Below, piece by piece: positions 1,186-45,900 of a stretch of 64,000 nucleotides of DNA. The stretch's first letter is position 1. Each line of letters begins with the position of its first letter. Location of the stretch: NCBI GenBank assembly GCA_905178155.1, contig CAJINV010000010.1, positions 423,866 through 487,865 on the forward strand. The letters run 5' to 3'. The notes under the pieces are model-generated. The model worked only from the letters and a program-made list of their open reading frames with translations, ran no database searches and was not told where the DNA came from. This DNA comes from Amoebophrya sp. A120 (lineage: Eukaryota; Protista; Dinoflagellata). The position numbers were made by a program, and so were the translations under genes.

Positions 1186-4100
1186 TTACTTCTTCCCCCC
1201 GCCACTGCTACCCGCCGCTGCCGCCGGCGCCGCGACCGGTCTTTCCGGCTTTGGTGGTAACGGATCGCCCTGTTCCGCGGCGGTTTTTTCCAGCGCTTTG
1301 TATACCAACGCCGCTCGTGTCAATCCCCGCCACTTGCACTGGTCGTCCATCTTCATCATAGCCTTTTTGATCAGAAACTGCCCCCGGGTCTGCATGGTGC
1401 CCGAAGCGACTTTACAGAGGGCAGAGAGGGCCAGAAGGATGCATTGGAGATCCTGTTTTAAGAAAGACGTCGTCAATGATGAAAATGAAATAATAAAACT
1501 TTAACTTACACTACTTACTCTGCGGCGTGGGTCATGATACGCCCCCAGCTCGGCAAAAATCGATTTCTTACTTATCGCAAAAGCATCACGCATGATAAAC
1601 TCCTATCTTTAATTAAAGTTCCATACCTCTTCCGCCTTCGAAGAGTCTGGCACGACGAAGTCGAACGATCGATTTTTCTATGAAATGCAAAAGCATCGCA
1701 CTACCTAGTAGTATATATCGCATGACAAATTTCCTCAGCATGAGAAAGAAAACTTGTAAATGCGGATTTATCCTCAGAAAGAAATTTGTATTGCATGAAT
1801 GCGATTAGTACGAGTACGATACTTTTGCACAGGATATTTTCGTGTACATGCTGAAACACAGCCACGGCTTCAAACCCGGTTTTTCGCCCTTCGCCGGCAG
1901 CTTGAACAGCTTCTTCGACGCGACCACGTAAGCCCGGGAGGAAAACCCCCACTCGAAATGAATCACTTCCGCCAAATTCACCGTCATGGTTCCCCCCGTG
2001 ATTCCTGACCGTTTGTACATCAGGGTGTTATTATTCGCGTCGACGAAGACCGTCAAGGTCCGTTTGGATTCCTTCTCCGCGATTTTTTCCAGCAAAATCC
2101 CCTTCATCGCCTGCTTCACGTACTTGGCGAAATTCGTGTCCTTCGCGTTTTTCGGTTTGTTTTGGTGTCGGTCCTGGAGGTGGTTGATAGAGTTTTTCAT
2201 GGACTGCAGCTGATTTCGCTTCTCGCTGATCACCTTCTCGGTTTCCTCCCGCTCTTTCTCCCACTCCTGGCGGACCAAGTCGAGCTCTTTCTGCTGGTTG
2301 GAGCGACCTTTTATTTCGGTGGGGATAAGCGCAAGTGGTGTTTGTCATGCTCTTAGAAAATGAAAATCCCAACAGGACGAAAATTTTCATATATATGGAT
2401 CTGTGATGCATGATGAACAACAGCACAAGCAATATGGAAATCAAAAATACCGTCCTTCTCCGCCTCCAGTTGTGCGGTTAAATCGCTGTGCGTCTTCGCG
2501 TAGTCCTCCTTCATTTTCAACAACTCCGTGCGCAAATGCTCTGTTACTGTTTCCAAGATCGTGATTTCGTCTTTTGCAATGTCCAGCGAGACCGCGGCTT
2601 CTTTTATCCTAAGTAAAAACGTCCCCACCCCATAGTCAAGTTGGGATTCTAGCAACACAAATCTCCAAGTTTTGGGAGCTGTGCATGACAAGTTTCCCTC
2701 TGCAGTGTCGTGCTGGTTGGCAAGGGAAGCCGCATGAGAAAGCCACTTTCTCATCCTGTTTACAGCATTACAAATTAGAAAACGCGATTAGTAATGCCTC
2801 GTCTCATGCAGCTGCGCATTACAAATGTGCATGACAACTCTGGGGTGGGGACGTTTTTACTCAGGATATCTTTTTGCCGGTTGCTCACCTCCTCGACGAA
2901 AGCACCGCTATCAAAAGGAAAAATCCCCCCTCCCCATATCGAAGTGGAAATCTGTGATGCGGGATTTCTGTACACAAATCGGCTTTGTCTTGCAGTAGAG
3001 GAGTGCAGGCAAGTACAAAGCGGGAGCAGGTGTGTTTTGGTGCAGGCGCCTAGCAAGGCAGGCATGTCTTCCGTAGGCCATACAGCATGACAAATTACCT
3101 GCAGAACGCGGCCAGGTTTTTGGATTTGCCTGCTTGCAATACAGAGACGATTTGTGGTCTCAAATCAGCATCACAAATTTTCAGAAGTATCCCGCTTTGG
3201 TATGGGGAGGGGGGATTTTTCTTCACAATAACCGTACTCTTTCGTTTGCTGCGCGTACGCCTGCTGCATCTTGATGAAACAGGTGCGGAGGGGCTCCACC
3301 ATCTCGGTCAAGTGGGTGAACAGTTCTTGCTTGTGCTGTTTTGGTTAATTCAGTTTGTCATGCGTGGATAACAACAGACCTTATTGTTTCTGTAGCGCGC
3401 GGAGCTGCATGCAAAACAACAAAACTATAGATACCTTCGTACTCCGGTCCATTCCTTCCATGTGCATGACGTGGGTTTCCGCTTCTCTTCTGGTGAGTTT
3501 CAAACTGGCGCACATCACGTCTAATTCCAACTGCGCCTCGTGCAATCGGTCTTCCAAGTGCTTCCGGTTTTCCTGTGCGGTGGAAAGCTCGGCCTCCATC
3601 ACCGTGTACTTGTCTTGTAGTTTTTGAAAGTTGTTCTCCAACTCTTCCACTGTCAGGAAATAGCTGTCCCTCTCCATCACTCGTTGGTTAGAGTTTTGCT
3701 GCGCGTCCCGGAGATCCTGATAGGCTTGGGCGTTTTGCCGCCGCAGACTGTCGATCTCCTTCGCGTATTCACCTGATAGATTTCGTCGTTACTTGTATAA
3801 AGAATTTTGACGAGGAGGTATTTTTATCAACGACACGGTGTTGTACTGCTGTTGAGAATGCGAAATGACAAAAACGTACTGTAATATCAATACTCAGTTT
3901 ATTCCTCAACTCCCCGCTCTCCATGTTGCTTATCGTCTCCAATTTCAACGAGCTCGTCCCGAGATTCGTGTTTCCCTTCAAAACCGCCTCGAGTTGGACG
4001 CACTTCTGCGTCAACTTCTCGTTTGACAGTTTCAACTCCGAGGTTTCCTTCTATGCATTGCAAATATGTCTGCTGGGTCTGGAAGATTAAAACTTGTCAT

Positions 4101-4961
4101 GCTAAATCTGAATGATGCAAAAATCTGTGTTGCGTGAGTACAAAAAGCTGTCCGCTTTTGACCAAGTTGAGAGGGAGTTTCCCATGCAGGAGAAGCATGA
4201 TAGTGACCTCAAATAAAGATCTGTCATGCTAGGTTTCGCATTCCAGACCTCATGGGTTATGGAAAACCTGCATGACAAGTCTTGCAACGTTCCAGACCCA
4301 GACATATTTGCAATGCATACCTTCTGTTCCGTGTCGATCTGGTCTTCCAGTCTCTGCTTCTCCAATTCTAATTTCTGAACCTCCTTGTACAAATTCTCGC
4401 CCCACTCGAGCAGCTGCGTGTATCAAATGCAAAAATGTCTGGGTCTGGGACGAGGATGGACGGACTTGTCATGCTGTCTTTGGATTCCAAAAAAAAACTG
4501 TATTGCGTACGGAACAAGAGGAGCCCAGTTTATGCTACGCGGAGGGGGTATTCCTCATGCGGTATAGGCATCAGGAAGCCCTCGCACAATCTCTGATGCT
4601 AGGTCATGCATTACAGGCATCATCGTTCATGCAAAATGTGCATGACAAGTGTTCCACTCTTCCAGACCCAGACATTTTTGCATTTGATAGCGTGCGCTCC
4701 GTTTCCATTTTGGTCACTTGCTCAATCATGTCGGCGGACAGGAGCTTGTTCGGGTTGTTTTCATCTGATAATTTTTTTTCTCATGCGGGAACAGCACGAA
4801 GAAGTGACTTTGTCTTTGTCATGCATTTCGTCGAACAAAAACATCATGATCATGAAATTAATACTCAATTCCCGATGGTATTTGGTCAGCTGTTCCGCCT
4901 CTCGCCGCAGGTCGTTCAAGACCCCGGCCTTCGGGTCCTCGGCACTCGTTGTGGCCTGCAT
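1186..4961 (-). CDS. Multi-exon coiled-coil protein with C-terminal PH-like domain; 5 introners plus several GT-starting introns
   Basis: Removing elements gives continuous peptides: PNKLLSADMIEQVTKMETERTQLLEWGENLYKEVQKLELEKQRLEDQIDTEQKETSELKLSNEK, YGAFVEEVSNRQKEAAVSLDIAK, and KPWLCFSMYTKNRSFDFVVPDSSKAEE/DLQCILLAL. CFS..T..RSFDF resembles the end of a PLC-type PH domain (inference). ATG at 4961 in AAAAATG context. Confidence 0.75.
1679..1836. mobile_element. Introner family B (TIR TATnnnnnGCAAAAGTATCG)
   Basis: TAT...ATA ends, TSD ttttc/ttttc; removal gives MYTK-NRSFDF. Confidence 0.92.
2605..2868. mobile_element. Introner family C (TIR TATCCTnnGTAAAAACGTCCCCACCCC)
   Basis: TSD tcttt/tcttt; removal gives RQK-EAAVSL. 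Confidence 0.92.
2909..3230. mobile_element. Introner family D (TIR TATnnnAAGGAAAAATCCCCCCTCCCCATA)
   Basis: TSD accgc/accgt; removal gives TKEYG-AFVEE. Confidence 0.88.
4052..4319. mobile_element. Introner family A (TIR TATnnnnTGCAAA(A/T)ATGTCTGGGTCTGGAAG)
   Basis: TSD ccttc/ccttc; removal gives TEQK-ETSELK; can be read as GT-AG. Confidence 0.92.
4421..4689. mobile_element. Introner family A
   Basis: TSD gcgtg/gcgtg; removal gives METERT-QLLEW; no GT-AG reading in any register. Confidence 0.93.
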
Positions 4962-6020
4962 TTTTGTGCTGGTGCTGCTGCTGGCGTTCTGTTCGTGTTC
5001 CTTCGGAGGTTAATGCAAACCAAAACCTCCACCTCTCCCTACTCCCGGAAAGAAGTGCCGCCAATTTTCACCAAGTCATCGTAGCGATACTGACGCACGA
5101 TGTTGCCGGCGCGCAGAATAACAGAGCGCCGGCGCGGTTCTTTATTTTCTTCAAAAAAACACTACTTGTACTTTTAGCGAGTGCTAGTGCCTGATCAAGG
5201 AGACACAGCAGCCAATACTCCATGATGAGAGGCGGTTTGATGAAGAGTATGACACATCACGATCGTCCCAACATTAGAGCAATAAGGATATAAAAACGCA
5301 CCCCGTAACGAACGATGGAAGACGATTATGATCTTGCCCCAAATGCATCACGAAAACCCGCGAGACTGTGAGAGGCACAGATGCCGACACGCCTATTCGA
5401 ATGAGAGAGTCTCCTAAGGTGACTTCTCAGGCCTGAGGGTACACGATTACTGACATCAATCACAGACGATGACTGACGCGGATCCGGATGACAACTTCAT
5501 AATGCCAATCGCGGCTAGAGTTCTTTTCACGATTTCAGACCCCAACGAGTACGAGTGGCAGTGAACAGGCTTCCATGATACTGTGGAATCGTCTAGCACG
5601 ACGCGTCGCCTGATCGAGCTGCATCTAGTTTGCAATCATCGGCTCTATGGCTCCACTTGCATTTGCCCTGCCTACAGTGCAAATCGAGAATTACAAAAGC
5701 AGCAAGGAGCGAGTACAACAGGCTGAGACTCAGTTAGATCTTTATTCACAAAAAAGGGTCAAAATTTTTCGTAGCAGAACTTGTAGTACCTTAACCTTTG
5801 TCAGACTTGAAAGTGGACCATCATTTTAGACAAATGGAAATGAACAAAGCTCATGAAACTAACTCCATGGTATATGCAGTGACACTTTATTGCTTACGTA
5901 TGAAAGTTCCCCCTTGTAACTGGCTAGTGTAGTTGTTCTTGTTTCATCCTGGCTGCATTTCTACGTTTACTACTGACCCAATACTTTCTGAAGCGCATCG
6001 GCCGTCCGCGCACCCTTCAT

Positions 6021-9000
6021 CTAGAGATGACTGACATCGTGCTGGTGCGAAAAACCATCGAAACCGCTACCGCGCGCTGCGGCCGCGCGAGTGCGTGCAG
6101 GCGTCACCTCTGCCATCATCACAAGTCCTCGCAGCTCCTTCTCGTAACATTCTTCCTGCAACAGTGCTTGCGGGTCGGGGGCGAGCCGAAGTTTGTGTTG
6201 CGCGTCTTCCAAAACATTTCCCGCGAACTGATAAGTGGCGCTGGGGCAGAGGAGAGCTCCTTTGAGCAACACGTGGAGGCGGGACAGGTAGTGGTCGATG
6301 ATCTTATTTGGTGCAGAAGTAAAAGTAGCTGCTTCACTCTTGCCAGCGGAACCAGGATAATGGGCGTGATGTTCCACGTTCGACAAAGCAAATCTCTTTG
6401 CCAGATCAAAGCTCAGCTTTGCCAAACCCCCATACTTCTCCTTCAAATCTTGTCTTGCCACGCAGAGTGGCAGTCCGGGCTCACACAGAGCCTTGGCGTG
6501 GAGGGTCGTCAATGTGACCAGGTAGTTGAGAAACAAATCGAGCTTGTATTGCAGCTCGGGACGAGAAGCAGGTGTTAAACTGTCGATGGCGCTGATCTCC
6601 GAGATTTCCACTACGCTGGAATCCGAATCAGTACCACCAAGAGCAGCGCCATTGTGTTCTTCTTCTTCTTTCGCCAACACTTCCATCATCGCCGAGACCA
6701 GCGCTTCGTCGGTGCTCGACTCGTTGCTCTGCGTCAGATTCAGTTCACCATCTTCAGTCTGGGGCGACAACGACAAGTAGAGTGAATCTCCCGCCCTGTC
6801 TGCAACAAGACTCCTGTTGCTTTTTTTACCGTTCTTGCTACCGGAAGATGGTGCGGACAAATTCGCGTCGGGTTCTACATCAGTCTCCATCCCTCTGCCA
6901 AAACCGTAATTCTGCGAGGAGATGCTGTTCTCCTCAAGCGGAAGTGGAAGATCTCGGCCTGATAGGAGATCCTGCAGGAGGTACTCCGGATGGTAAGTCG
7001 GCGTTGGGATCATTCCGTGTGGGCCAGCAGCAGCACTAGAAAGAGCTGAAGTATAGAGACGAAATAGGTGATCTTCAGCACTGTTCTTATCCCTAAAGAA
7101 ATTCGCAGCATACCGTCGGGATTTGCCTTTTTTTTTTGCGCCAGCGCAGGCGCTGCAGTTTTTATGGTCGCGCCTGCGTAGAAGTGCTGTTGCCTCCCCT
7201 GGTGGGTTTTTGCACGCGGCCCAGGCGTCGTTCTAGAGGAACCAGCAGGCATTTCAGCACCCCGGCGAACCTAGACCCAGACTAATGAGGCCCCCCCACT
7301 GCGCAGATCGACGCGCCCAACGGGCACTCACAACACAGCCATCCGGCGCAGGCGAGCATCTTTTCCGCGGCCCCGGGCCCTACGTACTCGCAACCCAAAA
7401 AAGGCCGCAAGCCGGCTCGTGCGGACTTGGTGCGCAGGCCCCTCGTGACCCCTTGGAACTCTTCAAGCGCAACCCAATCTCCCACCCACCGCCCCACTCA
7501 CTCACCGTTGGCACCGCTTTCGCGGCGATGGTGGACGCACTGGCAGAAGACCTTGAAAGCTTCCCGCCTGGTACTCGTTTGAACGCTTCGGAGAGATAGA
7601 TAAGAACACCTACTGCAACGCCCTGGCATTGATGTTTTGGCATGAAGCAGAGTTGGAGCTTCTGCGCCAAATGTTCCCGTTCTCGAACACTGCTGCTCTT
7701 ATCCTCCACGCCGTGCATAGATAAGAACACGTTTGTAACGACCTGAAGTTGGTGGCTGGCACGAAGCAGAATGACATCTTCTGCGCCAGAGGTTCCCGTT
7801 CTCGCAAAAATGCTGTTCTTATCCTCCAAATGGTGCATAGATAAGAACATGTTTGTAACGACCTAAAAATGGTGTTCTTATCTATGCACGAACAGGAGGG
7901 ATAAGAACAGCACTTTTGAGAGAACGGGAACATCTGGAGGAGAAGCTTCAATTCTGATCGTCCAATCATCTCCGTGCATAGATGAGAACTTCTTTATCTA
8001 TGCACGGAGTTGGAGGATAAGAACAACAGAAAACGAGAACGGGAACATTTGGAGCCGAAGCTACAACTCTGCTTCATCCCAAAACACCACAGCAGGTCGC
8101 TGCAGTAGTGTTCTTATCTATGCACGAGCGGGAACGTGCGCAGCTGAAGCACCATCTTTGCTTCGTGGACGTGGTCCCATAGCCATATACATATCATTTT
8201 ATGGAGCCAGCGCCCCACCGGTCCTAATTTAGGACCGACGGCACGGCGCAGGCACCAAAGACAACACCGGAGGGGCCATCATCTGCTGCCTGACACAAAG
8301 AGAGACGAGTGGGCGCGCACACTGCCGCGGCCCGGTGCGACCGCCGGCGTAGCCCCGGCTTGGGGGGGCTCTTTGGGTGGGGCATCAGCTCGCGCCCGGG
8401 CGCGCGAACTTGGACGCAGTGGCCGGCGGTTATTCTGTCAGTGTGCAGAGCGTTCCCTGGCGCATGAGCTGGGGCTGCGCTAAGCACGAAAGCGCGACCC
8501 TCTGGATGATGCGCGGCGAAGGCTTTGGATAGCCCTGGGCGGTGGCGCTTTTGTTAGCCTCAGACACGCCAGGCCTTGCCTAGAATAAAAAAAGCCCACG
8601 AATCGCGACGGTATGGCGCGATTTTTCTTAGGGATAAGAACACGCGGGAAGATCACCTTTTTCATCTCTATATGAAGGTGAGCGACCAGCTGCAGCAGAA
8701 GCCAACGCTGCACCTCTTCTCCAATCGCTTGGGACTCCGAGGGCATTCGAGATTCGCAGCGTCGAAGATGCAGATCCTGTTCCGGTAGGTCCTGCTGCAG
8801 CTATGTCCTCTGCGTTGTTTTCGCCATTCCTAGGGAGGAGAGAAATCCTGGGAGCCACGGTCTCTCGTCCGTTCCGCGCCAACGGCGTCATGTCAAACGG
8901 CGGCACAACTAGATTCTCCAGGTACGGTGTCACGTCTTCGCAGCTGCAGTTCATATCGTCCTTGGCTGCTGCTGCTGCACCATCTGTACTCACCGCCCCT

Positions 9001-10832
9001 TCACTTAATGATGACCGCACAGACGGGTCAGTGTCCGCATCTTTTCTGTTTTCGTCGTCGTTGCGAGCACCACTGACAATATTTCCCACCATTTCAGGCA
9101 CAACATCAGGGGCCCCACCTTCATGACCTTCTTGTTCTTCATCGAAAAACATTCCGCCCTGCATGAACTGCATGGTTTCCGCTCGTTTCATCCAGTCGGA
9201 GATTGAAATTTCCGGCGGTAGTGCTTCACCGTTCTCGTCGTGCAAAAGTTGTACACCCGCTGAGCTTGTTTTATGCGCCACTACGTTAGCGATGCTGTAC
9301 TGAGTATCCTCGTCTTCTCCGCCATCGAAATTTTCAGCGTCGTCCAAATCATCGATTTCCGCTGCCCAGGTGTTCTGCAGGTGAGTGTTAGCGGGAGGCT
9401 TGCTCAACATCATTGAAAGGGCAGGTGGATTTTTATTTTTTTCGTTGCTGAACGATTGCACCCGGTAGGAGTCGGTGTCGGACAGGGACGGGCTATAAAC
9501 AGGATCGTGAGCAGCAGTTTCTACTCGTCTAGCCCCCGGTCTCACGTCCTGCTGATGTTGTTGCCCGTGGGCTGCGGGGTCTTCAGACTTCACCGGGACA
9601 CCTCGTTCGAGAATTGCTTGCACATTCGGGTGAAGTTGAGACGGTACCCGCATGCCTTGCGCCGGTACCGCAGCAGGTGTAGGCGTAGCTGCTGGAGAAG
9701 ACCACGAATTACATGGTGGCAAGTTCTTGGAGAAGTCAACCTTATTCAAGTTCTTCAAATCCGCGACAAAACTTCGCAAAAACGAATCTACCGTTTTCAG
9801 ATTTGGGTTTTCCAAGGTCGCGAAGTCCCAGATTTTCTTGTCTAGTGAGACGGTGGTAGATCGAGCTCGTCGGTCCATCTGCTGTCGATTCCTTTCCTCG
9901 ATGTTGCTGCGTTCTTCGATCGGCGTCTTTTCCATTCTGGAATCCAAGAAATCCCAGAAGGCGAAAATCCTTGTATTTCTTGCCCCAGATCCACCAGGAA
10001 CTGCTGCCTCTCGTCTGTTCCTCTTGAACTCTTCCCAAAGAGCGAGCTCTTCTTGGAGGACAGAACTTTTCGGCGCTCCCGTTTGCGATCTTTCCTTGCG
10101 CAAAGACGTTGCAGCACTGCTGGGCACGCAGATCTCATCCTGATGTCCAGCTTCGGCAGAAAGCGCGGAAGTGGTGCTTTGCGCTTTACTTCTTGTTTCA
10201 CCTCCTTCGACGCCGGACAGGTCGTCGGTTTTGTCCGTCAGCTGCCTTACCAGTTGATCCAACAGGCCGCTCCCGCTGGAAGCACCCAACCAGCTTTCTG
10301 GTGAATTTTCATCTCCATCCATTCTACCGCATTGCGACACGTACGTTGGCACGACTGGGGAGGCAGGAATCGTCCCGACATCGCGTGTTTGGCCTCCCGA
10401 CAGCTGCGCCTGCAGCAACAGAGCTGCTAGAGCCCGTGAGATAAACGAGAGACGAGTCCTTCGCTTTTGCGAAGATGCATTCTCTCGCCTAGCAGGATGG
10501 CGTGCAGCTTTTGTCGTGTCACAGGCAGAGCTACTGGTGGTGCCGGCATCCTGCAACACTTTCTTCACCAGCCGGGGAGGTCGTGAAAATTGGGCGCGAA
10601 CCCTGGCTGCGGCACTCATAGGACCATCATATGTGTCATTTTCTTCACCCGGCCGCCCGATTTCTTGTTCTGTACTCGCCGTATGATAACCGCCACTCTT
10701 CAGGGACACTGCGACAGCGTTCGCCAATGGAGGTGCAGTGCCGAAGGTAAGTGTCCCTGTGAAGGTTAGCAGAACTACCCAGCAGGCCACAACCTGGCGG
10801 CAGCCAGCGCTAGTAGCGACAGGTTTTGTCAT
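6021..10832 (-). CDS. ~1060-aa hypothetical low-complexity protein with hydrophobic N-terminus, two exons split by a giant introner
   Basis: ORF 8628..10844 and ORF 6021..7013 join in frame (GRSPS-ALSSAAAGPHGMIPTPTY) after deleting 7052-8672 plus one TGAAG. N-terminal VVACWVVLLTFTGTLTFG suggests a signal or TM segment. Confidence 0.75.
7052..8672. mobile_element. Giant introner-like TIR element, 1621 bp
   Basis: Begins TATAGAGACGAAATAGGTGATCTTC and ends GAAGATCACCTTTTTCATCTCTATA. TIRs ~70 bp at roughly 80% identity; perfect TSD tgaag at 7047-7051 and 8673-8677. Confidence 0.9.
7596..8166. repeat. Head-to-head array of ~118-bp units inside the giant element
   Basis: Units carry GCATAGATAAGAACAC and GTTCCCGTTCTCG. 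They run one way in 7596-7865 and inverted in 7872-8166; the symmetry centre (~7860) matches the element centre. Confidence 0.85.
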
Positions 10833-12145
10833 AATTTTGTGCAAAATACAACAGATGAAACAGCTCCTTTATACAGACCCCCTAGACTAGATATCGCATG
10901 ACGCTCCCGTAATTAATATTCCCGTACGCGACCTGAAGATGGAAATGATGGACTGATCGTGAAGAAGAAAAACTCGTACGTAGAAATATCGCACTTGGAA
11001 GTTCTGTTGGTGTGAGCGCGACGAGGACGAGCCAGAACAAATTACCATTTTGCTCGCGTCTACAGGAGTCTCACCCGCCTTTTTGTTCGCCATAAAACCT
11101 ACATCGTAATCTGTCCAGCACAAGGTCGAGGGAGAACACCTCTGCTGTTTGGGCGTCGTGGTGCCAGTTCTTCGAAAGCCCACCATTAAGTGGCGCCCTT
11201 TTATCGAAATCTTCCGCCAATTTCCACTTTTTTTGAACAGGGAGCGACAAGAACGGGGATTACCAAAGTTGATTTCGCCTACGCCTTAAGAGCTGCTGAA
11301 GTGACAGTTTAGTTTGCGCGACAGCAACAGAAATTGCTTCTTCAAACCTTGCTGCTGCTCTGATATGATCGACGGATCCATCAAAAGTCCTCGAAGTCTA
11401 GCACAATAGGCGAAACGGTAATGGTAATCACAGCAAAAAGAAACCTGCTAAAACGGAGCGGCGGCTCAAAGTTCAAAAGGTACGCGGTTCAGAGTTCTAG
11501 TGAAAAGTGAACTTCTTGATAAAGGAAATACGCAGATGAGACGGTCTAGTCCTAGTGTAGCTGCGAAATAAGATCCAAAGGTATGTTATAGAAACACAAA
11601 GGCAGGAAGAAGTGGTAAAGTAAACGAAAAGTTCAAAACAACAAGTTCAGGTGAAAAGTTACAGCCGATGTCTAGTAGCGGGGCGAGCGGTACTAGACAG
11701 TTCTCTACTGCTGAATCTAATTCTAAAGGCAAGAACAGAAATTTAGATCTAACTACATAAGGATTTTGAGGATATCAATTGTCAAAAAGTAAAGGAGTAT
11801 CATGGGTAACAGTACGCTCACGAACTCATCAGCAACTCGCCCGCATCACCCTGCACCAGCGACACCGGTTCATCATCTCGAGAAGAAGAGCCCTCTCTCC
11901 CCGACTAGACGAGCACCAGAGATTGTGTCTGTGGTTGAGCGTCTCGTCAGGGCGTCGCAGAGGTGCATGCTGACAAGCGGCGGTAGATGAGGAGAAAGAA
12001 CTTGCTTGAGAGTGTGGAAGCGACGTAGCAGCAGTTCAGAAGTAGTGGAGCAGTACAGAAACTGAAACAGGAGCGGGTAGAAGTTCTTGCAGAAGTAGGA
12101 ACAATGCGAATGCGAAGAAGTAGTTGAAGCTCATCTCCTTCTTCT

Positions 12146-14600
12146 TTACGACGGCTGTCCCGCAAACAGTTGCTCCTTTGCCTTCGGGTATGGAAAGAAA
12201 GCGGCATTTTCGGGAAGAAGTTTGTCATGCGTGGTACTTTGGTACGTATCACCAGTCTTGTACTTGTTCAAGGACCATAGGCATATTTAAAACTGGATGA
12301 CAAACTTCTGACAGAAAAGCGCTTCTTATTCGTAAGTACGAGAACATGTTGACGCCGCACGTTTCGTAGTACTTACGTATGGGACGGAAGATAGTATTTC
12401 TTGCTGTCTCAAGAATCAGCAGGTGGGGTTGATACAGAGAGGCCCATACATATTTACAGCGAGCTCGCTGTGGAGAACTAGCAGGTGTTAAAAGTAGTTC
12501 ACATTTATTTTCTCACCATGACCAATTGCATCGGCCCGAGGCACTTGCAGATGAAGCCAAGAAATGTTTCTTTTCGATAAGTTTCCCGAACAAGACGATG
12601 TCGCACTCGTTTGGTATGCAAAAAAAAAATTTGATCTCAATTTGTAATGCTTGTCCCTCTACAACACCATCAGTTTTGTCGCTCATGCGGCTTGGGCAGA
12701 ATATTGGGTGGAATTCGTGAGGTGCAGGACAAGCAGGACAATTTGCGAGCAAATTTTTCCAGGCCGTAGCCTTTGGAAAGCGCCACGTTTGGCCCGGACC
12801 TTCACTTCTCCGCCACCTGAGATATTGATATTGTCATGCAGATTCACGCATCACAGATCTTTCTCGTAAACCGTCTTTATTACGCATGACAAACTTCAGA
12901 AGTCTTAACCAAAAGCTATACTTTGGATGCAGTGGGTTGACTGCAAGCTGGCCCACTACTCCCGCTGAAAGTATGGAAAGGAAGGAACAAAGGCTATGCT
13001 AAAATTTGACTTCCTTGGGTTTCATCTTTTGCCATGCGAAACAAGCTAAGGGTGGGGAAGCGACTACTCCCTCGTCGTGTGAATCACGCATGACAAATTT
13101 CGGCTGAGCAAGTTTCTTCCACCTTCCATACACGTTGCTGGCAACGCAAACCGGTCGATGTTTGCTTGTTTCATTTGCGCCAACTTGTCGTCGCATTCCC
13201 GCTGCAGGTCCTTCATCACAGGATCTGAAGTTTTTAGTCTTTGGCTTTTGTGTGATGTCGCATGAAAAACGCCTGTATCCAAGCAGTACACTGCATGACA
13301 AACTCATACTAAAAGTGTAAAATACCATTTGGGTCTGTGAAATGCTGTGAGATGGACAACGATCGGTCTCTGTGGTCGATTTCGTTCAGTTATGGAAGAG
13401 AAATGCCACAGCTCCTTTCTCGTCAGACCTAATGAAGCGTGTTTATGCAGGAAATCACTGGATCTCAGTCGAGTCTGCGCTTCAGCAGATGTATGAATAA
13501 TAGATTCTGTTCATGCAAAACCGCTACCAGAGAGAGGGGCTGCGTATCTGTACAAGGTTTTGTTTGCATATCTTGTACACCCGCTGCAATTCCCGCACTT
13601 GCTTTCCTATGAAATGCAAATATGTCTGGGTCTGGAAGAGGAGAAGTTTGTAATGCACATTTTCCATGATCCATGATGTCTGTGATGTATGCAACAGCAT
13701 CACAGATTTTTTGAGCGCTTATCTATGCGCATCCAGCATGACAAATGCCCTCTCCGCGTAGCCAAATTTGAATTCTCTTGCGGGTCATGCAATACAGGTT
13801 TTTTTAGCATCCAAATACAGCATCACAAGTTTGGCTCTTCCAGACCCAGACATTTTTGCATTTGATATTTCCACTGTTGCACCCATACGTCAGCTGCTTC
13901 AACACTGCGTCTTCGTGCTGGTTTGGTAGTTTTTGAGAACTTGTCATGCAGGAATGGTATTTTGTTGAAAGACATCTTTTATGCAGCAATAAACTTAAAC
14001 ATGAGAAGATGCAGTGCAAAACATATTAAATTATCTTACTCTAACATTCGGCGGCTTTTCCACCCAGGTTTTCTTCAACTTTGCGGCGTTGATGGGGTAT
14101 GGAAGGGAAAAACACGCCTGGCCGTGAATGCCAATTTCTGTCATGCCAATTTCAAATCAATCTTATGCTCTTCATGCAAGACAAATGTGAAGAATCGGCC
14201 ATATGCTAAAAACAGCAACACAAACAGTCACGGTCGATGATTTTCCCCTTTCCCGTAAATCCGGAACGCAGCCTATTCTCGGAGCGGGTAAATACTGCTT
14301 TTCGCTGTTAATCTATCACAGGAAAAAAGTGTTACAGTTACACACTTGTTGGAGTTTCTGCATGACAAAGTTGCTCAACAATGCAAAGAAAACCTGTGAT
14401 GCGCAGACTATAGGGGAAACCACGAATGAAATGAGGCTGGCAAGCATTTCCTGCATGACAGAGGTGGTCTGTCTTGCTTGTCTTCCATCAGAGAGTGTAA
14501 CTGTAACAGTTTTTTCTCAGGATATAATCACGTTCGCCGCCACCTCGTTCATGGCGTTGGGCGTAGCGCCCTTCATCCGAAACACGCCGTCCAGGGCCAT
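12146..14600 (-). CDS. Hypothetical multi-exon protein (weak resemblance to ciliary microtubule-inner-protein motifs)
   Basis: Spliced peptides MALDGVFRMKGATPNAMNEVAANVINSEKQYLPAPRIGCVPDINAAKLKKTW, GCNSGKQVRELQRVYK, IDRFALPATSAGVVGQLAVNPLHPK, YYETCGVNMFSYKAKEQLFAGQPS*. Internal exon structure only partly resolved. Confidence 0.6.
12189..12334. mobile_element. Eroded introner (degenerate TIRs, TSD lost)
   Basis: Left end TATGGAAAGAAAGCGG...AAGTTTGTCAT versus reverse complement of right end TACGAATAAGAAGCGC...AAGTTTGTCAT; removal of element+5 nt gives NMFSY-KAKEQLF. Confidence 0.6.
12972..13130. mobile_element. Eroded introner
   Basis: TATGGAAAGGAAGGAAC...GTTTCTTCCACCTTCCATA; removal of element+5 nt gives LPAT-SAGVVG; 5' end reads GTATGG. 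Confidence 0.6.
13608..13867. mobile_element. Introner family A
   Basis: TSD tttcc/tttcc; removal gives CNSG-KQVREL. Confidence 0.92.
14098..14257. mobile_element. Eroded introner
   Basis: TATGGAAGGGAAAA...TTTTCCCCTTTCCCGTA; removal of element+5 nt gives CVPD-INAAKLKK. Confidence 0.6.
14314..14524. mobile_element. Introner family E (TIR TATCnnnGnAAAAAAnTGTTACAGTTACAC)
   Basis: TSD taatc/taatc; removal gives AANVI-NSEKQY. Confidence 0.9.
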
Positions 14601-31496: not shown

Positions 31497-33224
31497 CTAT
31501 CTTCCAACCACCCCAACCCCCCACTCCATCCTATCGAAATCCAACTCCAAGCGATAAAATGTGTCCTGCACTCCATAATCCGTCAAACTACCCCCTCCCC
31601 CACCAACCGGCCCGGTTTCCAACGGCAGCACAAGCACCGGCTCGCTGTAGTGTCCCTGAAAAGTCAAGCGGATCTGTATCTTCGGATCCATGCACTCTGT
31701 TGAAGTCACCAAGTAGTCTCCAGTCGTAGTACTTCGCTTCGCGACTTGCCACTTTTTCGAAATTGCAGTTTCCGCGATACTCGCCCGTTCGTAAACGAGA
31801 AATTCCACCTGTTTGAACAGCGAGTAAGGTCCGTTGGTGTTCAGATCCCACCCTTGGATCTCGAAAGCCACTTGCTTCGGCTCCTTCGTTGCTTTGTTCT
31901 CTTCGTTCTCGTAGATCTCGACGAGACTCGGAGCGGCGGGGTTGGCGATTGGTGTAAAAGGTTCTGATGCTGTCGCAGCATTCTCACCGACAGAGCCGTG
32001 CGGGTTTGATGTAGTTCTCGCACGCCCAGAAGTTGCTGTTGTGTTAGAGTTAGAAGTGGATCCACTACTGTTCCGCCCACTGCTTCTGGAGCTGAGTCTC
32101 GCGATCGCGCTCTGTAATTTCGCAGGTGGAGACTTAGTATTCATCGACGCCCGTCCAAGAACAGCATTGTCCTTGTTCCACCGCACTTTGACAATCCGCA
32201 GGCCCCGCACCAGCTTCCACTTTGGCACAACGACACCCATCTCTTTGCACAACAACCGCATCACCTCGTCGCAGTACCCTTGCAGCCGACTACTTGCAAT
32301 CTTGTCCAGTGGGGTTTTTTGCAAATTCGCGATGAAAAGGTCGCCAAACTGCTTCTCCCCGACAGTTTTCGGTATGTCCGCCGCGGGGGTCACCGTCAAG
32401 CTGCTCCCCAGCGCCAAGCAGAAATCCGCTTTTACCGCCGCGTTTTCCGCAGATTCTAACTCCTCCATCGGTAGGTTCTCCCCAAAATTGATGATCGAGT
32501 CGAGAAGTTGGCCATTACATTCACTATTGTCGCAAAACCGCCCGGTCTCGTGGGAATGCACTTTCTGACTGGTCCGGGTTCGGAAATCGCGTAGATACTT
32601 TCTTTTGCACTTTTTGCAAATCTCCAGGTTCCGGTTGCCGTGCAGTTCGGAAAATTTCGCCTTGTCCACGCCCGACCGCAAGTGCAGCCCGTCGGTGTTC
32701 TGGGACACGAGATGCTTCAAAACGCCCTGGTCCAGCATCGCTTTCAACGCCATATGGGTAAAGGTCGGGAACGCTTTTTGCACGTCTTGGATCCGATCTG
32801 TTTTACCACTCCTCCTTTCCTGCTTGCTCAGCGGCTTCTTCGCGTTTGCATCCTTCTCCCACTTCCCCGGTCCCGTTGGCAACACCGTATTCATGCCAGA
32901 TCTGAAATCCGGAATTCCGGCGGCCGTGGAGATCCCGGCGCCGGTGAAAGCGATGGCGAATTTGGCTTTTCTCATTTTGACGGCGATATGCATTGCAAAA
33001 GAAGTATCGTTGTACTCGTATAAATGCATCACAAATTTCCTCAGCATGAGAAATCAAATTTGTAATGCGGATTTAGCTTAAGAACACGATTTGTAATGCA
33101 TGATTGCAATACGAGTACGATACTTTTGCACAGGATAGGCGACTTCCTTGATTTTCTGCTCCAGAACCGCCGGGTCGTCGAAAAATTCTTTCACCTCCTC
33201 CTTGCTCCGGGCGGTGGCGGCCAT
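31497..33224 (-). CDS. NAD-dependent deacylase, class IV sirtuin (SIRT6/7-like)
   Basis: FTGAGISTAAGIPDFR, PTFTHMAL, VSQNTDGLHLRSG, ELHGN, CxxC, DSIINFGENLP, LGSSLTVTPA, NLQKTPLD. The N-terminal exon MAATARSKEEVKEFFDDPAVLEQKIKEVA joins in frame after removing the introner. Confidence 0.95.
32987..33137. mobile_element. Introner family B
   Basis: TSD ggcga/ggcga; removal gives KIKEVA-VKMRKAKF. Confidence 0.95.
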
Positions 33225-34472: not shown

Positions 34473-36337
34473 TCACTCCGTGCCCGTCCACGCCACCCTG
34501 GGTGGTTGCTGCTGCACGCCTCCGCCCCGCTGCCCCCGCCCCCGCCGTGGCGCGTACGGGTCTCTCTGGTTCGGTGGCGCATCGGCCCAGGAAGCTGTCG
34601 TCGTGGTGGTCGTCGTCAGGCTTGTCACGAAGTCATTTGTCATCGGCCCTCGTGGCGCGAAACTAGCCTGGGGGAGGGTATCGGAGGTGGGGGCTTGGAA
34701 CATGCTGGCGTTGGGGGTTGGAAGATTACCGTTTATTGGCATACTATCATTACTGTTGTAGCCGGGAGTACTATATCAACTGCAAATATGTCTGGGTCTG
34801 AGACTTGTCATGCACGTTTTGCACGAGCCAAGATGCCTGTGATGCATGCCCTAGCATCACAGACTTTTTGATGAGGGCTTCTTGATGCCTATTCCGGATG
34901 ACAATTGCCCTCTCCGCGTAGCAGACACTACATTTCCATTGCTGCCCATGCAATACAGATTTTCTTGGAATCCAAATACAGCATCACAAGTTGCATTCTT
35001 CCAAACCCAGACATATTTGCATTTGATAAACTAGAAGAAAATTGCTGCGATTGTCCACCTATCCTGTGCAAAAGTATCGCACTCGTATAAATGCAAGTCT
35101 TGCATTACAAATCTTCCTCTTGAGGCAAATCCGCATTGCAAATTTTATATCTCATGCTGAAGAAATTTGTAATGCATTTATACGACTACGATACTTTTGC
35201 AGTTCATACCACCACCTCCGCTCGCAGCGAATCCTCTGCCGACGAACTGGTCCTGTTCCGCCGAGTTTCTGCTTTTGTCGTTGTCAATGATCAAACCGGT
35301 CGGGATGTTTGTCGGCACGTTGTCTATGGCCGTGCCGTGGGAATTCAAGACCGGTTGCCCGACGACCACCGTGTCCACAGGTGGTTATGCATTGCAAAAG
35401 TATCGTACTCGTATAAATGCATTACAAATTTTCTCAGCATGAGAAATAAAATTTGTAATGCTAATTTACCTTAAGAAAAATATTTGTAATGCAAGACTTG
35501 CATTTATACGAATACGATACTTTTGCACAGGATAGTGGTCGCATGCCCCCGATTCCGTCTTGGTACTGCAACGCCGCGTATCCATTGCAAATATGTCTGG
35601 GTCTGGAAGAGTTGCGCACGATTTGTCATGTACATTCTGCATGACTCGTGATGTCTGTGATGCGCGCTCTAGCACCACAAATTATGCGAGCGCTTTCTGA
35701 TCATCCCGCCATGCCTATTCCGCATGAGAAATGATGTCCACTCCGCGTAGCACAAACTGGACTCTTCTTTTGCTGGTCACGCAATACAGATTTTTCTTTG
35801 GAATCCAAAGACAGCATCACAAGTTGTAACCTTCCAGACTCAACAGATGACATATTCGCAATGCATACCGCGTCCCTCCTTCGCGCCTCCTCCCTCGATT
35901 TGGCGGAATAGCGCTCGATCAGTATGCACAGCCCGCAGATTCCCAGCGACGCACCGGCCATCACGGCAAACCCGATCATCCAGCTGAGCATGTCGTTGCT
36001 ATTGTCGTCGGTATATGCATTGCAAAAGTATCCTATTCGTATAAATGCAAGTCTTGCATTGCAAATCTTTGTCTTAAGGCAAATCTGCATATACAAATTC
36101 TATTTCTCATGCTGAGAAAATTTGTAATGCATTTATACGAGTACGATACTTTTGCAATTGATACGGTAGAACTATCGTCAGCGGAGGACGATGACGGCTG
36201 GACCCGCGAACCCGCACTTGGAACTTCCTGCCCGGGGAGGTTATTCACGCCGGACGTGTCTCCGACGACTACATTTAGGCTAAATATGGAGGGACTACTC
36301 TCAAGTGGTGCTACTACCTTGATCGCTCCTGCGCCAT
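34473..36337 (-). CDS. Hypothetical single-pass membrane protein, 4 introners
   Basis: Spliced: DSSTDDNSNDMLSWMIGFAVMAGASLGICGLCILIERY...RRDAALQYQDGIGGMRPPVDTVVVG...GGGGQSQQFSSS(T)PGYNSND...WTGTE*; start codon tentative. Confidence 0.7.
34774..35028. mobile_element. Introner family A
   Basis: TSD tacta/aacta; frame restored. Confidence 0.9.
35060..35208. mobile_element. Introner family B
   Basis: TSD ccacc/ccacc; frame restored. Confidence 0.93.
35386..35534. mobile_element. Introner family B (opposite orientation to 35060-35208)
   Basis: TSD gtggt/gtggt; frame restored. Confidence 0.93.
35579..35867. mobile_element. Introner family A
   Basis: TSD ccgcg/ccgcg; frame restored. Confidence 0.92.
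36014..36163. mobile_element. Introner family B
   Basis: TSD cggta/cggta; frame restored. Confidence 0.93.
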
Positions 36338-42901: not shown

Positions 42902-45900
42902 TCATTTCCCCGGCGACAAAGACGACGCTGCAGCGGAAGAAGACGCAGCACCCCCTTCCTCCCCCAATGAAATGCAAATATGTCTGGGTCTGGAAGAGTG
43001 TGATGCTGTTTGTGCATGACACAGAAGGTCTAGCATGCAAGTCCTAGCAACACAGGTTTTGAGTAGGTTACGTTAGGCGATGCCTAAGTAATCCGCATGA
43101 CAAAGTTCCCTCTTTTGGTAGCAAGAAATGAGCAACTTTTGCGGTCCATGGATGACAGATTTTTTTCTGGTCTCAAATACGCATGAGAAATTTACATGTT
43201 TCCAGACCCAGACATTTTTGCAATCCATACCCCCGCCACCGTTCCAACATCAGGGCACGACGTGTTCTGTCGCACCTTCCCCGGTCCGGTGGAGGCATCG
43301 GAACTTTTCTCGTCGCTGCTGTTAGAAAAAGATTTTTCGCTGCTTGCGCAAGACGTATTGTTGCTGGTGCTGGAAGACGTTCTGCCGTGGTTGCCCGCAC
43401 GCTGATGCTGCTGGTCCTGTTGCTGCTGCCACGAGGAACGCTGCCGCGAGTGCGTGGCGTTCTGAAGGTTGTTTGACGAGGTCAAAAAAAATACACATCT
43501 TCATGATTTGTCATGCATTGATGCAACCCCGAAATAAATCGCTACTGCATGAGCATGCGCATGCTTGTCAACGTGCATTACAAACTCCTTTTACCTCAGC
43601 CCTGACGCCGCAGTAGTGAATCTGTTTTTTCGGGTCGCGTTCTATCCTGTGCAAAAGTATCGTACTCGTAGTAATCGCAGCCATGCATTACAAATTTCTC
43701 TCTGAAGTTAAATCCGCATTACAAATTTTATTTCTCATGCTGTGGAAATTTGTCATGCGATTTATTTTATACTAGTGAGATGCTTTTGCATTTCATACGT
43801 TCGATGGTCTTGCCAATCGAGATGTCGTCCACGTTGTCAATTCCGTCCTCCTCGATCCATTTCCGCACGTCGAGCTCGATCTTCTGGCACTTCTGTTCCA
43901 ATTGGTAAGCATCCTGTCCCGACCGGCTGTAGTTCGTTAAATGCGTTTTGTAGTGCACTTTCGCGAAATCCAGAAGGGCCTGGAAAAGCAGAAACCGGAA
44001 CTGGAAGTTCGTGGAACCTGGAGTCGGTAGTTTTGGGTGTGGATTTATTTTCTGGTTTGCGAATAATTGTTTTTTTCTAGGTATTGTACATGATGCACAG
44101 CCCATGCATATCAAAACCCTGTGAACAAGTTGGAGGAAAGAGCTTTCGGAACGAAAACGAATGCTAATAAAAAATTACTTAAATACGCTATACCGATCTT
44201 GTAAGCAAATCTTCTGTTGGCCAGCAATTCATGCGCATCGCTCACGTATCCGCAAAAGCACATCAGGCGGGCGGTATGTTGGGAAAATCTTGACCTTGAG
44301 GCTAGAACGTGACAGAATTAAGTATACAAGATTTGCATTCACCGCTTCTTGCTTGAAGGGATGGCACCACTTGTAAGCCTGTACGACCAAATGCATATTA
44401 ATCCTCTCTTTAGGCCGCCATGGACGCACCACCCGTTCTTATTCTTGTACTACTTCTAAATAAGCGAATCACAATCCATTTGACTTGTCCAGCATCCCCA
44501 ACATCAACTTTTCCCTCGATACATCAGCGCCGCGTCGCTGTGCGCGTTGTAGTATGCAATGCAAAGTATAAGTATCGCACTACTAGTATAAATTGCATTA
44601 CAAATTTCCCCAGCATTACAAGTTGAATTTGTAATGCTGATTTGCTTTGAAAAAGAGATTTGTATATGCATCACTGCAATTAGTACGAGCGCGATACTTT
44701 TGCAGTGCATATGTAGTACCCCGTCTGCGGACTGGTGAACGTGTAGAACTGCCGCAAAAACACCGGGTAGTAGTGCTCCAGGACCGACTGCTGAAATGGC
44801 AGATTGTTGGGGCGGTACCGCTCGAATGCGGAACACATCATGCACCAGATCCGGCTGTTTGACGGGATGTTGTGCCGCTCCTGGTAGTCCACGATCTGCC
44901 ACAGCATCTCCCAGCACTGTTCCTTCGAGATGTCCGGGTTGATTTTGTGGAAGTATTTGTTAATGAGAAAACTAGTCACGTGCAAAATCCCATTCGTGTC
45001 CAACTTCCGGTGCGATTGCATTTTGTTTTTCTTCTGGTAAACGGAAATTTGTTCCTGGATCACCTCGTGCAATTGCGAGAAGGATCCCGGGCCCGGGTTC
45101 AAAATTTGCTGGTACCGCTGCAACCCCTTCAGGAAGTTGGGCTGTTTGCTGTTCATGTTAATGCTGTTGATGTTGTGATTCGAGGACCCGGCGCCATTTA
45201 TTTTTCCTTGCGGATTGGAACAACTTGTGGACGAAGATCCTGCGATAATATTGCCCCCGCTGGCATGCTGACAACTGTGGCTCAGTTTCTGCAGCGCGAG
45301 GTTTTTGTTACTACCCGATGTTGAACTTCGCTGCTGCAGCGCCGTCGTGTGCTGCTGGTGTTGTTCCAAAATTTTAGAAGCGGAAATGTTCGACCGGTTG
45401 CTGATGCTCAACGCAGTTTGCGGCGACATGTTGTAGTAGAGCTCTTGTTGGTGCAGTCCGCTTGCTATGGAACTGTCAGGATTGAAATTGACAAAGTTGA
45501 AATGATTTGTCATGCATGAAATGGATGCCAGTTCGTTGGAACCCAGTTTCTAAGTGGCGCATGACAAATTTCGGTGGTCCTTAAATCCAGTTTGTCATGC
45601 TGTTTAGGCAAAGAAGAGGGATTTTCTCATGCTACTTTAGCAGCTCGAGCTCTAACCCCAAACAGGCTTACAATCGGCCTCACTTGCCTGCTCTGCAACA
45701 CACGCACCTCGCGTCATGCATTTTCTGCATTGCAATTTGTTTCAACTTTGACGATTTCAAACCTGACGCTTCCATACTTGCCGCGGCCGACACATTCGTA
45801 ATGGGCGACGGACAGGGCGACGGGTGGAAAGATCCAGCTCCTTGGGTCGTCGAACAAGCGTTGTAACTGTAGGTCAGATTCCCCGGGAAGTCGTAGTTGA

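Follow-up and report, generated by a model that had tools for sequence, protein, structure and literature searches.

The window analysed here is a 64,000-nucleotide stretch of the Amoebophrya sp. A120 genome in which two minus-strand open reading frames lie on either side of a long element with inverted ends. The locus raises the question of whether this element is a transposon that leaves the RNA, so that two apparently separate ORFs form one gene, and, if so, what could guide the removal of so long a sequence. All positions are those of the window.

Structure of the element

The element occupies positions 7052-8672 (1,621 bp), starts with TATAGAGA, ends with TCTCTATA, and has a perfect 5-bp TGAAG on either side (Table 1). 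Its terminal inverted repeats (TIRs) measure 86 nt each and are 78% complementary, close to the approximately 70 bp at about 80% identity of the original prediction. The window contains two occurrences of a 25-nt terminal pattern, compared to 0.00 expected from shuffles, and an alignment of the arms of 10 copies shows that both begin with TAT, 7 nucleotides and AAA. The arms had also been described as GC-rich, and the two internal arms are indeed 63.5% and 63.4% GC versus 48.9% for the window. An origin as an old palindrome was rejected, since the likeness between left and right internal arms is no greater than that of shuffled sequences. Between them, a reverse self-match of the element spans query positions 545-1070, the central array. 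Each TIR contains a single GATAAGAAC motif, and this array contains eight; 10 of the 11 matches to the motif in the window fall inside the element, where 0.53 matches were expected. Pfam searches with five ORFs of the element gave nothing above threshold and no recognisable coding remnant, and a search of positions 6900-8800 against Rfam gave only sub-threshold, miRNA-precursor-like matches on the central hairpin.

Thirteen other TAT...ATA elements with perfect 5-bp duplications were identified in the window. They range from 149 to 321 bp, so that the 1,621-bp element is 5-10 times longer than its neighbours while sharing their TAT/ATA ends and duplication length, as had been proposed. In 20 shuffles of the sequence only 0-1 such structures appeared, and six other head trinucleotides gave none.

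Table 1. Features of the element and its host gene in the window
Feature	Position	Strand	Basis
Coding exon 2 of host gene, P0001 residues 721-1061 and stop codon	6021..7046	-	341/341 residues identical
Non-canonical intron of 1,626 nt per transcript contig, comprising the element and one TGAAG copy, 5-nt register ambiguity	7047..8672	-	X1 contig joint
Left target-site duplication copy, TGAAG	7047..7051		identical to 8673-8677
Left terminal inverted repeat, TAT-N7-AAA start, GTTCTTATC motif at 7083-7091	7052..7137	+	repeat pairing and arm alignment
Left internal arm, 458 bp, 63.5% GC, unique sequence, without recognisable coding capacity	7138..7595		composition, shuffles, Pfam
Central head-to-head array, ~120-bp units, ~77% self-complementary, 8 copies of GATAAGAAC	7596..8130		repeat families, reverse self-match
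Right internal arm, 456 bp, 63.4% GC, unique sequence	8131..8586		composition, shuffles, Pfam
Right terminal inverted repeat	8587..8672	-	repeat pairing and arm alignment
Right target-site duplication copy, TGAAG	8673..8677		identical to 7047-7051
Coding exon 1 of host gene, P0001 residues 1-720	8673..10832	-	ORF and public protein

The host gene and removal of the element from RNA

The upstream minus-strand ORF (8628..10844, 738 amino acids) runs 14 codons into the element before it stops, which places the stop of the unspliced frame at 8628 as predicted; ORF 6021..7013 is the downstream continuation of the same gene. Excision of 1,626 nt fuses ...AGRSPS with ALSSAAAGPHGMIPTPTY in frame. The predicted gene of approximately 1060 residues exists as a public A120 protein, P0001, of 1,061 amino acids, which carries the exact predicted junction AGRSPS|ALSSAAAG and has no Pfam match above threshold. 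This fused gene model was already public before the present analysis. Public A120 gene models were built from transcriptomes (PMC7789003).

A second source of evidence is sequencing run X1, which is RNA by guess only. A single 3,095-nt contig of this run, at a depth of 15.2, passes straight from position 7046 to position 8673 and leaves out exactly 1,626 nt; the joint can be placed anywhere within the 5-nt TGAAG repeat. Two runs that are certain to be RNA, X9 and X10, yielded no reads here and thus do not bear on the joint. Pieces of the element in X1 have depths of only 0-6, below the flanks at 15.2, the opposite of what DNA would give for a 25-copy repeat. Each of the runs X1-X4 contains 0.69-0.74 of the sampled words, and 0.68 is expected if the element is missing. 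X1 is possibly the same data that lie behind the public gene models, in which case contig and protein would be one line of evidence rather than two. Transcription of the gene runs through the element, and the element with one copy of the duplication (1,626 nt) leaves the RNA, which restores the reading frame that preceded the insertion. We estimate at about 85% the probability that the element is a transposon of the A120 introner class and is removed at the RNA level.

The joined contig might instead represent DNA of an allele or strain with an empty site, and thus an insertion polymorphism rather than spliced RNA. The guessed nature of X1 leaves room for this reading, and the youth of the family (98-99% identity, see below) makes such a polymorphism plausible. 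However, a DNA repeat of about 25 copies should stand far above its single-copy flanks in X1, and the element stands below them. The pattern expected of DNA is displayed by another, DNA-like run, X5, in which the element has a depth of 200-800 and the single-copy flanks 28-30. Moreover, the transcriptome-built public gene models remove two different copies of the family. We consider an empty-site allele very improbable.

Slightly less probable still is excision of the element from DNA in some cells, in the manner of the internal eliminated sequences (IESs) of ciliates, with the joined transcript arising from excised copies. The end consensus of Paramecium IESs is TAYAGYNR, and the terminus TATAGAGA fits it at 7 of 8 positions; removal is also precise and leaves one repeat copy, as this reading would have it. 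Against it, X5 contains only filled-site contigs, at single-copy depth, which span 5900-7080 and 8646-10900 and bridge both borders of the element, and neither a 1,626-nt skip nor an empty-site joint was seen in that run. An IES of the ciliate type was rejected on these grounds. In addition, Amoebophrya is not known to have nuclear dimorphism.

It could also be argued that the transposon merely sits inside an ordinary spliceosomal intron with GT-AG, GC-AG or AT-AC borders. The ends of the skipped sequence read TG..TA on the plus strand, and on the mRNA strand the possible registers are CT..TA, TT..AC, TC..CT, CA..TT, AT..TC and TA..CA. The 5-nt repeat permits these six registers, and none of the three canonical pairs occurs in them on either strand. 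The joint furthermore matches the ends of the element and not signals internal to it. What can be said for an ordinary intron is that the same repeat layout is present in 15% of canonical A120 introns (Farhat 2021, PMC7789003), and that a second removed copy, L031, allows GT...AG in one of its six registers. That register exists only because the duplication of L031 happens to be CCAGG in mRNA sense. We regard an ordinary intron as scarcely tenable for the window copy.

A family of related copies in the genome

The original prediction would have been undermined if the TIRs had no other copies in the genome. Approximately 25 loci of the element family, with 40 termini, were found in Amoebophrya sp. 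A120. Of the seven full-length copies, six match the window copy at 98-99% identity and the seventh, an older one, at ~90%. The six young copies are 97.6-99.7% identical to each other in pairwise comparison and have a uniform length of 1,620-1,624 bp. The family also includes truncated copies and deletion derivatives, and the 86-nt TIRs are nearly invariant between copies. Perfect 5-bp duplications flank 10 of 11 complete copies; nine of the ten are distinct, because two copies sit in a segmental duplication. Since the flanking duplications vary by site, the family is a recently mobile, non-autonomous DNA transposon. It has the features by which such elements are recognised, namely TIRs, duplications of fixed length and variable sequence, near-identical copies and no transposase ORF.

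In the public protein P0002, the product of a gene with a cytochrome-b5 domain, another copy has been removed: L031, which is 1,620 bp long and has the duplication CCTGG. Here the removed sequence is 1,625 nt, a length not divisible by three. Kilobase-scale removal is real, since two 1.62-kb copies are taken out in the same way, and the earlier suggestion that the removal mechanism tolerates cargo of this size is borne out at two loci (1,626 and 1,625 nt). Both copies verified within genes (n = 2) have the same orientation relative to their own gene. For L034, a copy in the opposite orientation, no identical protein was found among the protein representatives (best match 36% identity); the flank of another copy, L042, is repetitive and had no protein match.

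Search for longer relatives and a transposase

The whole genome was searched with the element in full and with its 86-nt arm, its 22-nt terminus (allowing at most 3 mismatches), a 13-nt terminus and an inner 16-mer. The 22-nt terminus had 40 genomic matches, and these, like every match to the inner 16-mer, fall within the same family of elements no longer than 1.63 kb; the matches to the 13-mer do so as well, except for three lone sites. An apparent 3.7-kb copy (L045 on C7) was rejected as a longer element because its interior is a run of N, an assembly gap. The segment between two outward-facing termini at L048 on C3 proved to be host sequence between two truncated copies rather than an element.

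Membership in the hAT superfamily was rejected: the duplication is 5 bp and not 8, and the hAT dimerisation domain PF05699 had no match in the genome, in a search that is weak on genes split by introns. Comparison with Ginger and other integrase-type (rve) elements shows that the 5-bp duplication fits, although no family member carries an ORF. The genome does contain ORFs with rve integrase domains, a few of which, at C13:1158987, C180:1549, C4:9585307, C27:336401 and C11:818632, have no reverse transcriptase within 5 kb. Overall, TAT termini with a 5-bp duplication did not fit any of the named superfamilies that could be tested.

These searches bear on the proposal that the element arose by deletion from an autonomous transposon still present in the genome, whose shared TIRs would lead to the transposase. 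In its favour, non-autonomous elements are usually derived from autonomous ones, integrase-type DDE enzymes typically leave a 5-bp duplication, and the genome has rve ORFs, a few of them lacking a nearby reverse transcriptase. The termini, however, led back only to this family of short elements: the 22-nt terminus and inner 16-mer match nothing but ends of known copies of at most 1.63 kb, the 13-mer adds only its lone sites, and the one apparent long copy is a gap. Nor do the six youngest full-length copies, uniform at 1,620-1,624 bp, or the element ORFs, which match nothing in Pfam, point to a larger parent. Thus the TIR did not serve as bait for a transposase as had been hoped, and descent by deletion from a parent still resident in this genome now seems improbable.

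A possible mechanism of removal

On our reading, the element is probably a non-autonomous, cut-and-paste DNA transposon of the A120 introner class, with TAT-N7-AAA TIRs and a 5-bp duplication, whose insertion into a coding exon of an orphan, 1,061-residue minus-strand gene would be recent. In the pre-mRNA the two TIRs may pair to form a long stem. Because the base of such a stem would lie exactly at the element ends, the two 5-nt repeats would be brought side by side, and the excision machinery could cut at fixed distances from the stem base with no need for GT-AG. The intervening 1.4 kb would then be irrelevant cargo. The machinery could be either a spliceosome lacking U1 or another enzyme. 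The GATAAGAAC motif, in turn, is a putative binding site for a transposase supplied in trans.

Folding predictions are consistent with this scheme. In the minimum-free-energy fold of a 1,681-nt pre-mRNA segment the first nucleotide of the element pairs with the last, and the duplex of the arms is predicted at -99 kcal/mol compared to -30 +/- 4 for shuffles. A subfamily carries one paired A-to-G change in both arms, which would be equally expected from a transposase that binds both ends. We give removal guided by the stem about an even chance. In a stronger version, the base of the TIR stem and the 5-nt repeats alone would define what is removed, independently of length (at least 1.6 kb of highly structured RNA), sequence and GT-AG, and the machinery would be something other than a conventional spliceosome, such as an endonuclease-ligase pathway. 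This version we think unlikely. If it were true, it would mean genome-scale, structure-guided processing of eukaryotic mRNA introns, and this long, young, multi-copy family would lend itself well, as a natural substrate, to proving it.

Comparison with known systems

Introner elements of A120 have been described as transcript-supported, non-canonical introns with inverted repeats at both ends that can form a hairpin (Farhat 2021, PMC7789003). Their inverted-repeat motif is TAT, 7 variable nucleotides and at least 3 A; a direct repeat of 3-5 nt lies over the borders, and the elements are repeated in the genome and lack a transposase (PMC7789003). The window element shares all of these properties with them, in the same organism: transcript support, borders other than GT-AG, hairpin-capable repeats, the border repeat, TAT-N7-AAA ends, multiple copies and no transposase. 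Because its ends fit the published motif, we consider it a long member of this known class. The published introners average 240 nt with inverted repeats of 8-20 nt (PMC7789003), whereas the window intron is 1,626 nt with TIRs of 86 nt and has a structured interior, with two GC-rich arms and a palindromic array that reuses the TIR motif. It thus exceeds the published range of 40-1,000 nt, which is an analysis window and not a biological definition.

Introners flanked by TIRs and bearing ORFs, such as "family 38", have also been reported from A120, and the ORFs of that family have Copia/Gypsy-like homology (Gozashti 2025, PMC12130899). Family 38 and the window element have in common the strain, the nature of intron-generating elements that resemble TIR DNA transposons, and a tolerance of introns far above typical introner length; they differ in that no ORF of this kind is found in the window element. 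In Micromonas pusilla and Aureococcus anophagefferens, on the summary given in PMC7789003, introners have canonical GT-AG borders that are either carried by the element or made with the duplication, and like the window element they are non-autonomous DNA transposons that have TIRs and duplications and yield an intron upon insertion. The window intron, in contrast, has no canonical pair in any register.

Similarities extend to unrelated lineages. The MITE-derived introns of the tunicate Fritillaria and the nonconventional introns of euglenids have borders other than GT-AG, a stem formed by pairing of their ends, and short repeats at the borders; they are typically short, and in Fritillaria the major spliceosome is thought to be responsible for their removal. 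The window element resembles them in its borders, its border repeats and a stem that would join the exons, but lineages and sequences are unrelated, and no U1 snRNA has been found in Amoebophrya. Foldback- and MITE-type transposons likewise have TIRs, duplications that vary between copies, no ORF, subrepeats in the interior and deletion derivatives, as this family does. The window element exceeds a classic MITE in size (1.6 kb), and it is not a true foldback element, since the arms beyond the 86-nt TIRs are not inverted copies of each other.

The novelty implied by the original prediction was therefore overrated, as introners of the same design, including ORF-bearing ones, have been published for A120. 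The literature already covers the class, its transposon-like nature and the occurrence of large TIR introners in A120, and our finding leaves that knowledge unchanged. Against this background, the locus indicates that non-canonical removal in Amoebophrya handles an intron about 7 times the typical length, with a strongly structured and GC-rich interior. This young family of ~25 copies, with near-invariant 86-nt TIRs, a candidate binding motif and two gene-verified members, provides a well-defined test substrate.

Removal of the element from the host transcript

The 1,621-bp element (window 7052-8672) transposed as DNA and is excised with precision from RNA. The host gene is read on the minus strand, where an ORF at 8628..10844 enters the element and meets a stop after 14 codons; a second minus-strand host ORF resumes at 6021..7046. 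The share of sampled words of the stretch present in public sequencing runs was 0.69-0.74 for X1-X4, close to the 0.68 expected with the element missing, and 0.94 for X5 and X6. A single contig of X1 (3,095 nt, depth 15.2) runs from 5900 to 7046 and resumes at 8673-10470, leaving out exactly 1,626 nt; because of the repeat, the joint is ambiguous by 5 nt. Element pieces occur in X1 at depths of 0-6, below the single-copy flanks. In the DNA-like run X5, contigs of depth 28-30 cross both element borders (5900-7080 and 8646-10900). The interior reaches a depth of 200-800, as expected of DNA of a multi-copy repeat, and a skip of 1,626 nt was not seen. The RNA label of X1 is a guess, but its depth pattern is the opposite of that of DNA and we therefore read it as RNA. 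Runs X9 and X10, which are certainly RNA, have 0 reads on the stretch and hence speak neither for nor against removal. The X1 contig stops at 10470 and a separate contig covers 10504-10900 (depth 5.8 versus 15.2); the gap at 10471-10503 may reflect a broken assembly or a transcript boundary within the annotated 5' coding part.

Exons 1 and 2 were compared separately with public proteins. Exon 1 as sole query gave one protein match, a 1,061-aa "unnamed protein product" of Amoebophrya sp. A120, at 100% identity. Residues 721-1061 of this protein are exon 2 (341/341 positions), and across the joint it reads ...AAAGRSPS/ALSSAAAGPHGMIPTPTY..., exactly the AGRSPS junction of the original prediction. 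In the public transcript-based annotation the element is thus already an intron. Splicing of the element and fusion of the two ORFs, as predicted, is supported by both the X1 joint and the protein, though it was already public; X1 may be among the source data of the annotation, in which case joint and protein would not be independent evidence. No Pfam domain was found in the host protein.

A second removed copy, L031 (C15:806855-808474, 1,620 bp, duplication CCTGG), is flanked on the minus strand by one open frame of 95 codons and another of 490. It is missing from a public A120 protein of 683 aa with a cytochrome-b5-like domain, in which residues 1-76 derive from the upstream side, 78-555 from the downstream side, and residue 77 spans the joint. 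Because the 1,625 nt removed are not divisible by three, the frame is regained only by exact removal of L031 plus one repeat. The protein search gave no usable evidence for copies L034 and L042. The window copy and L031 have the same orientation relative to the host gene, so that the two verified copies are one-sided in this respect.

In the window copy the repeat allows six registers, which in mRNA sense are CT..TA, TT..AC, TC..CT, CA..TT, AT..TC and TA..CA; none of them is GT-AG, GC-AG or AT-AC. For L031, whose duplication is CCAGG in mRNA sense, one register (1 nt before the element, 4 nt after) reads GT...AG; the same register reads AT...TC in the window copy.

Structure of the element

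The element starts with TATAGAGA and ends with TCTCTATA. The terminal inverted repeats (TIRs) and 5-bp TGAAG duplication noted originally were confirmed (see table), and a 25-nt terminal pattern has two sites in the window, both of them element ends (0.00 expected from shuffles). The interior is symmetric in layout and asymmetric in sequence, the GC-rich arms resembling each other no more than shuffles do. The 9-mer GATAAGAAC has 11 sites in the 64-kb window (0.53 expected), 10 of them inside the element: one inward-facing in each TIR and eight in the central array. The block GTTCTTATCCCTAA is invariant in both TIRs of every copy and its core recurs in the element centre; from this pattern it is a candidate transposase-binding site. 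ORFs of the element have 0 Pfam matches, and Rfam gave nothing real. Matches of the central hairpin (7793-7935) to several miRNA-precursor models from plants and animals stay below threshold, the best scoring 45.8 bits where the gathering score is 140; the feature is read as a long hairpin of generic kind and not as a miRNA gene.

Elsewhere in the window are 13 small elements of 149-321 bp, each with TAT...ATA ends and a perfect 5-bp duplication; shuffled windows yield 0-1 such elements, and six other head trinucleotides yield 0. Nearly all start with TAT-N7-AAA, and they are presumably ordinary A120 introners.

Coordinates of features in the window and of rve matches without a nearby reverse transcriptase
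Feature	Position	Details
Target-site duplication TGAAG	7047-7051 and 8673-8677	both sides of element
TIR arms	7052-7137 and 8587-8672	86 nt, 78% complementary (repeat finder)
Left internal arm		458 bp, 63.5% GC
Central head-to-head array		535 bp, ~120-bp units, ~77% self-complementary
Right internal arm		456 bp, 63.4% GC
Small TAT...ATA element	2605-2868	
Small TAT...ATA element	4052-4319	
Small TAT...ATA element	4421-4689	
Small TAT...ATA element	13608-13867	
Small TAT...ATA element	32987-33137	
Small TAT...ATA element	35386-35534	
Small TAT...ATA element	35579-35867	
Small TAT...ATA element	36014-36163	
Small TAT...ATA element	44553-44711	
Small TAT...ATA element	45466-45776	
Small TAT...ATA element	46077-46356	
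Small TAT...ATA element	54304-54624	
Small TAT...ATA element	54975-55240	
rve match	C13:1158987-1159295	
rve match	C180:1549-1857	
rve match	C4:9585307-9585552	
rve match	C27:336401-336652	
rve match	C11:818632-818814	

Genomic family and mobility

The A120 assembly (115.5 Mb, 401 contigs) contains about 25 loci of the family. There are seven full-length copies (1,620-1,627 bp): six share 97.6-99.7% identity and one is older (~90%). Others are internal-deletion derivatives (761-1,203 bp) or truncated copies. Perfect 5-bp duplications flank 10 of 11 complete copies, with nine distinct sequences (TGAAG, CCTGG, TTTAT, CTTCG, CTCTA, GGTGG, CGTCG, TGACA and CCTTT) and no evident target preference. 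Near-identical copies with differing perfect duplications are typical of a non-autonomous cut-and-paste transposon that has been active recently and duplicates 5 bp of its target site. Copies L033 (C6:1187168-1188787) and L035 (C6:1222246-1223865), 35 kb apart and 99.7% identical, share the CTTCG duplication and flanks, which indicates one segmental duplication including the element rather than two insertions. Two left ends 6.7 kb apart (C14:1413710-1413731 and C14:1420449-1420470) begin with CAT rather than TAT, lack a right end, and are probably duplicated dead fragments. Copy L045 contains a ~2.8-kb run of N at 4242-7061 (C7, about 1838331-1841150), an assembly gap or withheld stretch where the repeat probably broke the assembly.

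The original prediction that the element is a deletion derivative of an autonomous transposon was not supported. Across the whole genome, the 22-nt terminus with up to three mismatches gave 40 matches, all ends of known copies; every match to the inner 16-mer belongs to known copies, as do those to the 13-nt terminus save three lone matches. The TIR was thus unproductive as transposase bait in this assembly. Copy L045, apparently 3.7 kb long, was rejected as a longer member because of its gap of N. With the ORFs also unmatched, there is no sign of a cut-down autonomous element. The genome has 30 matches to the integrase domain rve, most adjoining Copia- or Gypsy-type reverse transcriptase; five sit in long open frames, with neither RVT_1 nor RVT_2 matched within 5 kb, and may represent DNA transposons of integrase type. 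An enzyme of that type would fit a 5-bp duplication. No transposase was reported for A120 (Farhat 2021, PMC7789003); TIR-flanked A120 introners with integrase-like ORFs have been described (Gozashti et al. 2025, PMC12130899).

A proposed stem-based model of removal

In the minimum-free-energy fold of a 1,681-nt pre-mRNA segment, the first element nucleotide pairs with the last, so that the TIR stem begins exactly at the element ends, with the two 5-nt repeats next to each other and unpaired at its base. The arm duplex has an energy of -99 kcal/mol, versus -30 +/- 4 in shuffles. Farhat et al. (PMC7789003) proposed this geometry for A120 introners, and we accordingly favour a model of stem-guided cutting, in which the TIR stem would direct cuts at fixed offsets whose sum equals the repeat length and the interior would be passive cargo. 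In the subfamily of L040, L042 and L043 an identical A-to-G change occurs at corresponding positions of both arms and keeps the pairing; the change is equally expected if one protein binds both DNA ends, and so it does not separate an RNA stem from protein binding.

Comparison with published introners

Farhat et al. 2021 (PMC7789003) described ~30,000 repeated non-canonical introns in A120, averaging 240 nt, with inverted repeats of 8-20 nt carrying the motif TAT + 7 nt + AAA and direct repeats of 3-5 nt; only introns of 40-1,000 nt were analysed, and U1 snRNA was not found. The element shares every structural feature of these introners and differs in its greater size, longer TIR and organised interior. 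Removal does tolerate kilobase-scale cargo, as predicted (1,626 nt and 1,625 nt), but this is not new, since diverse TIR introners, including ORF-bearing ones, are published for A120 (Gozashti et al. 2025, PMC12130899). The element is thus an unusually long introner of an already known class.
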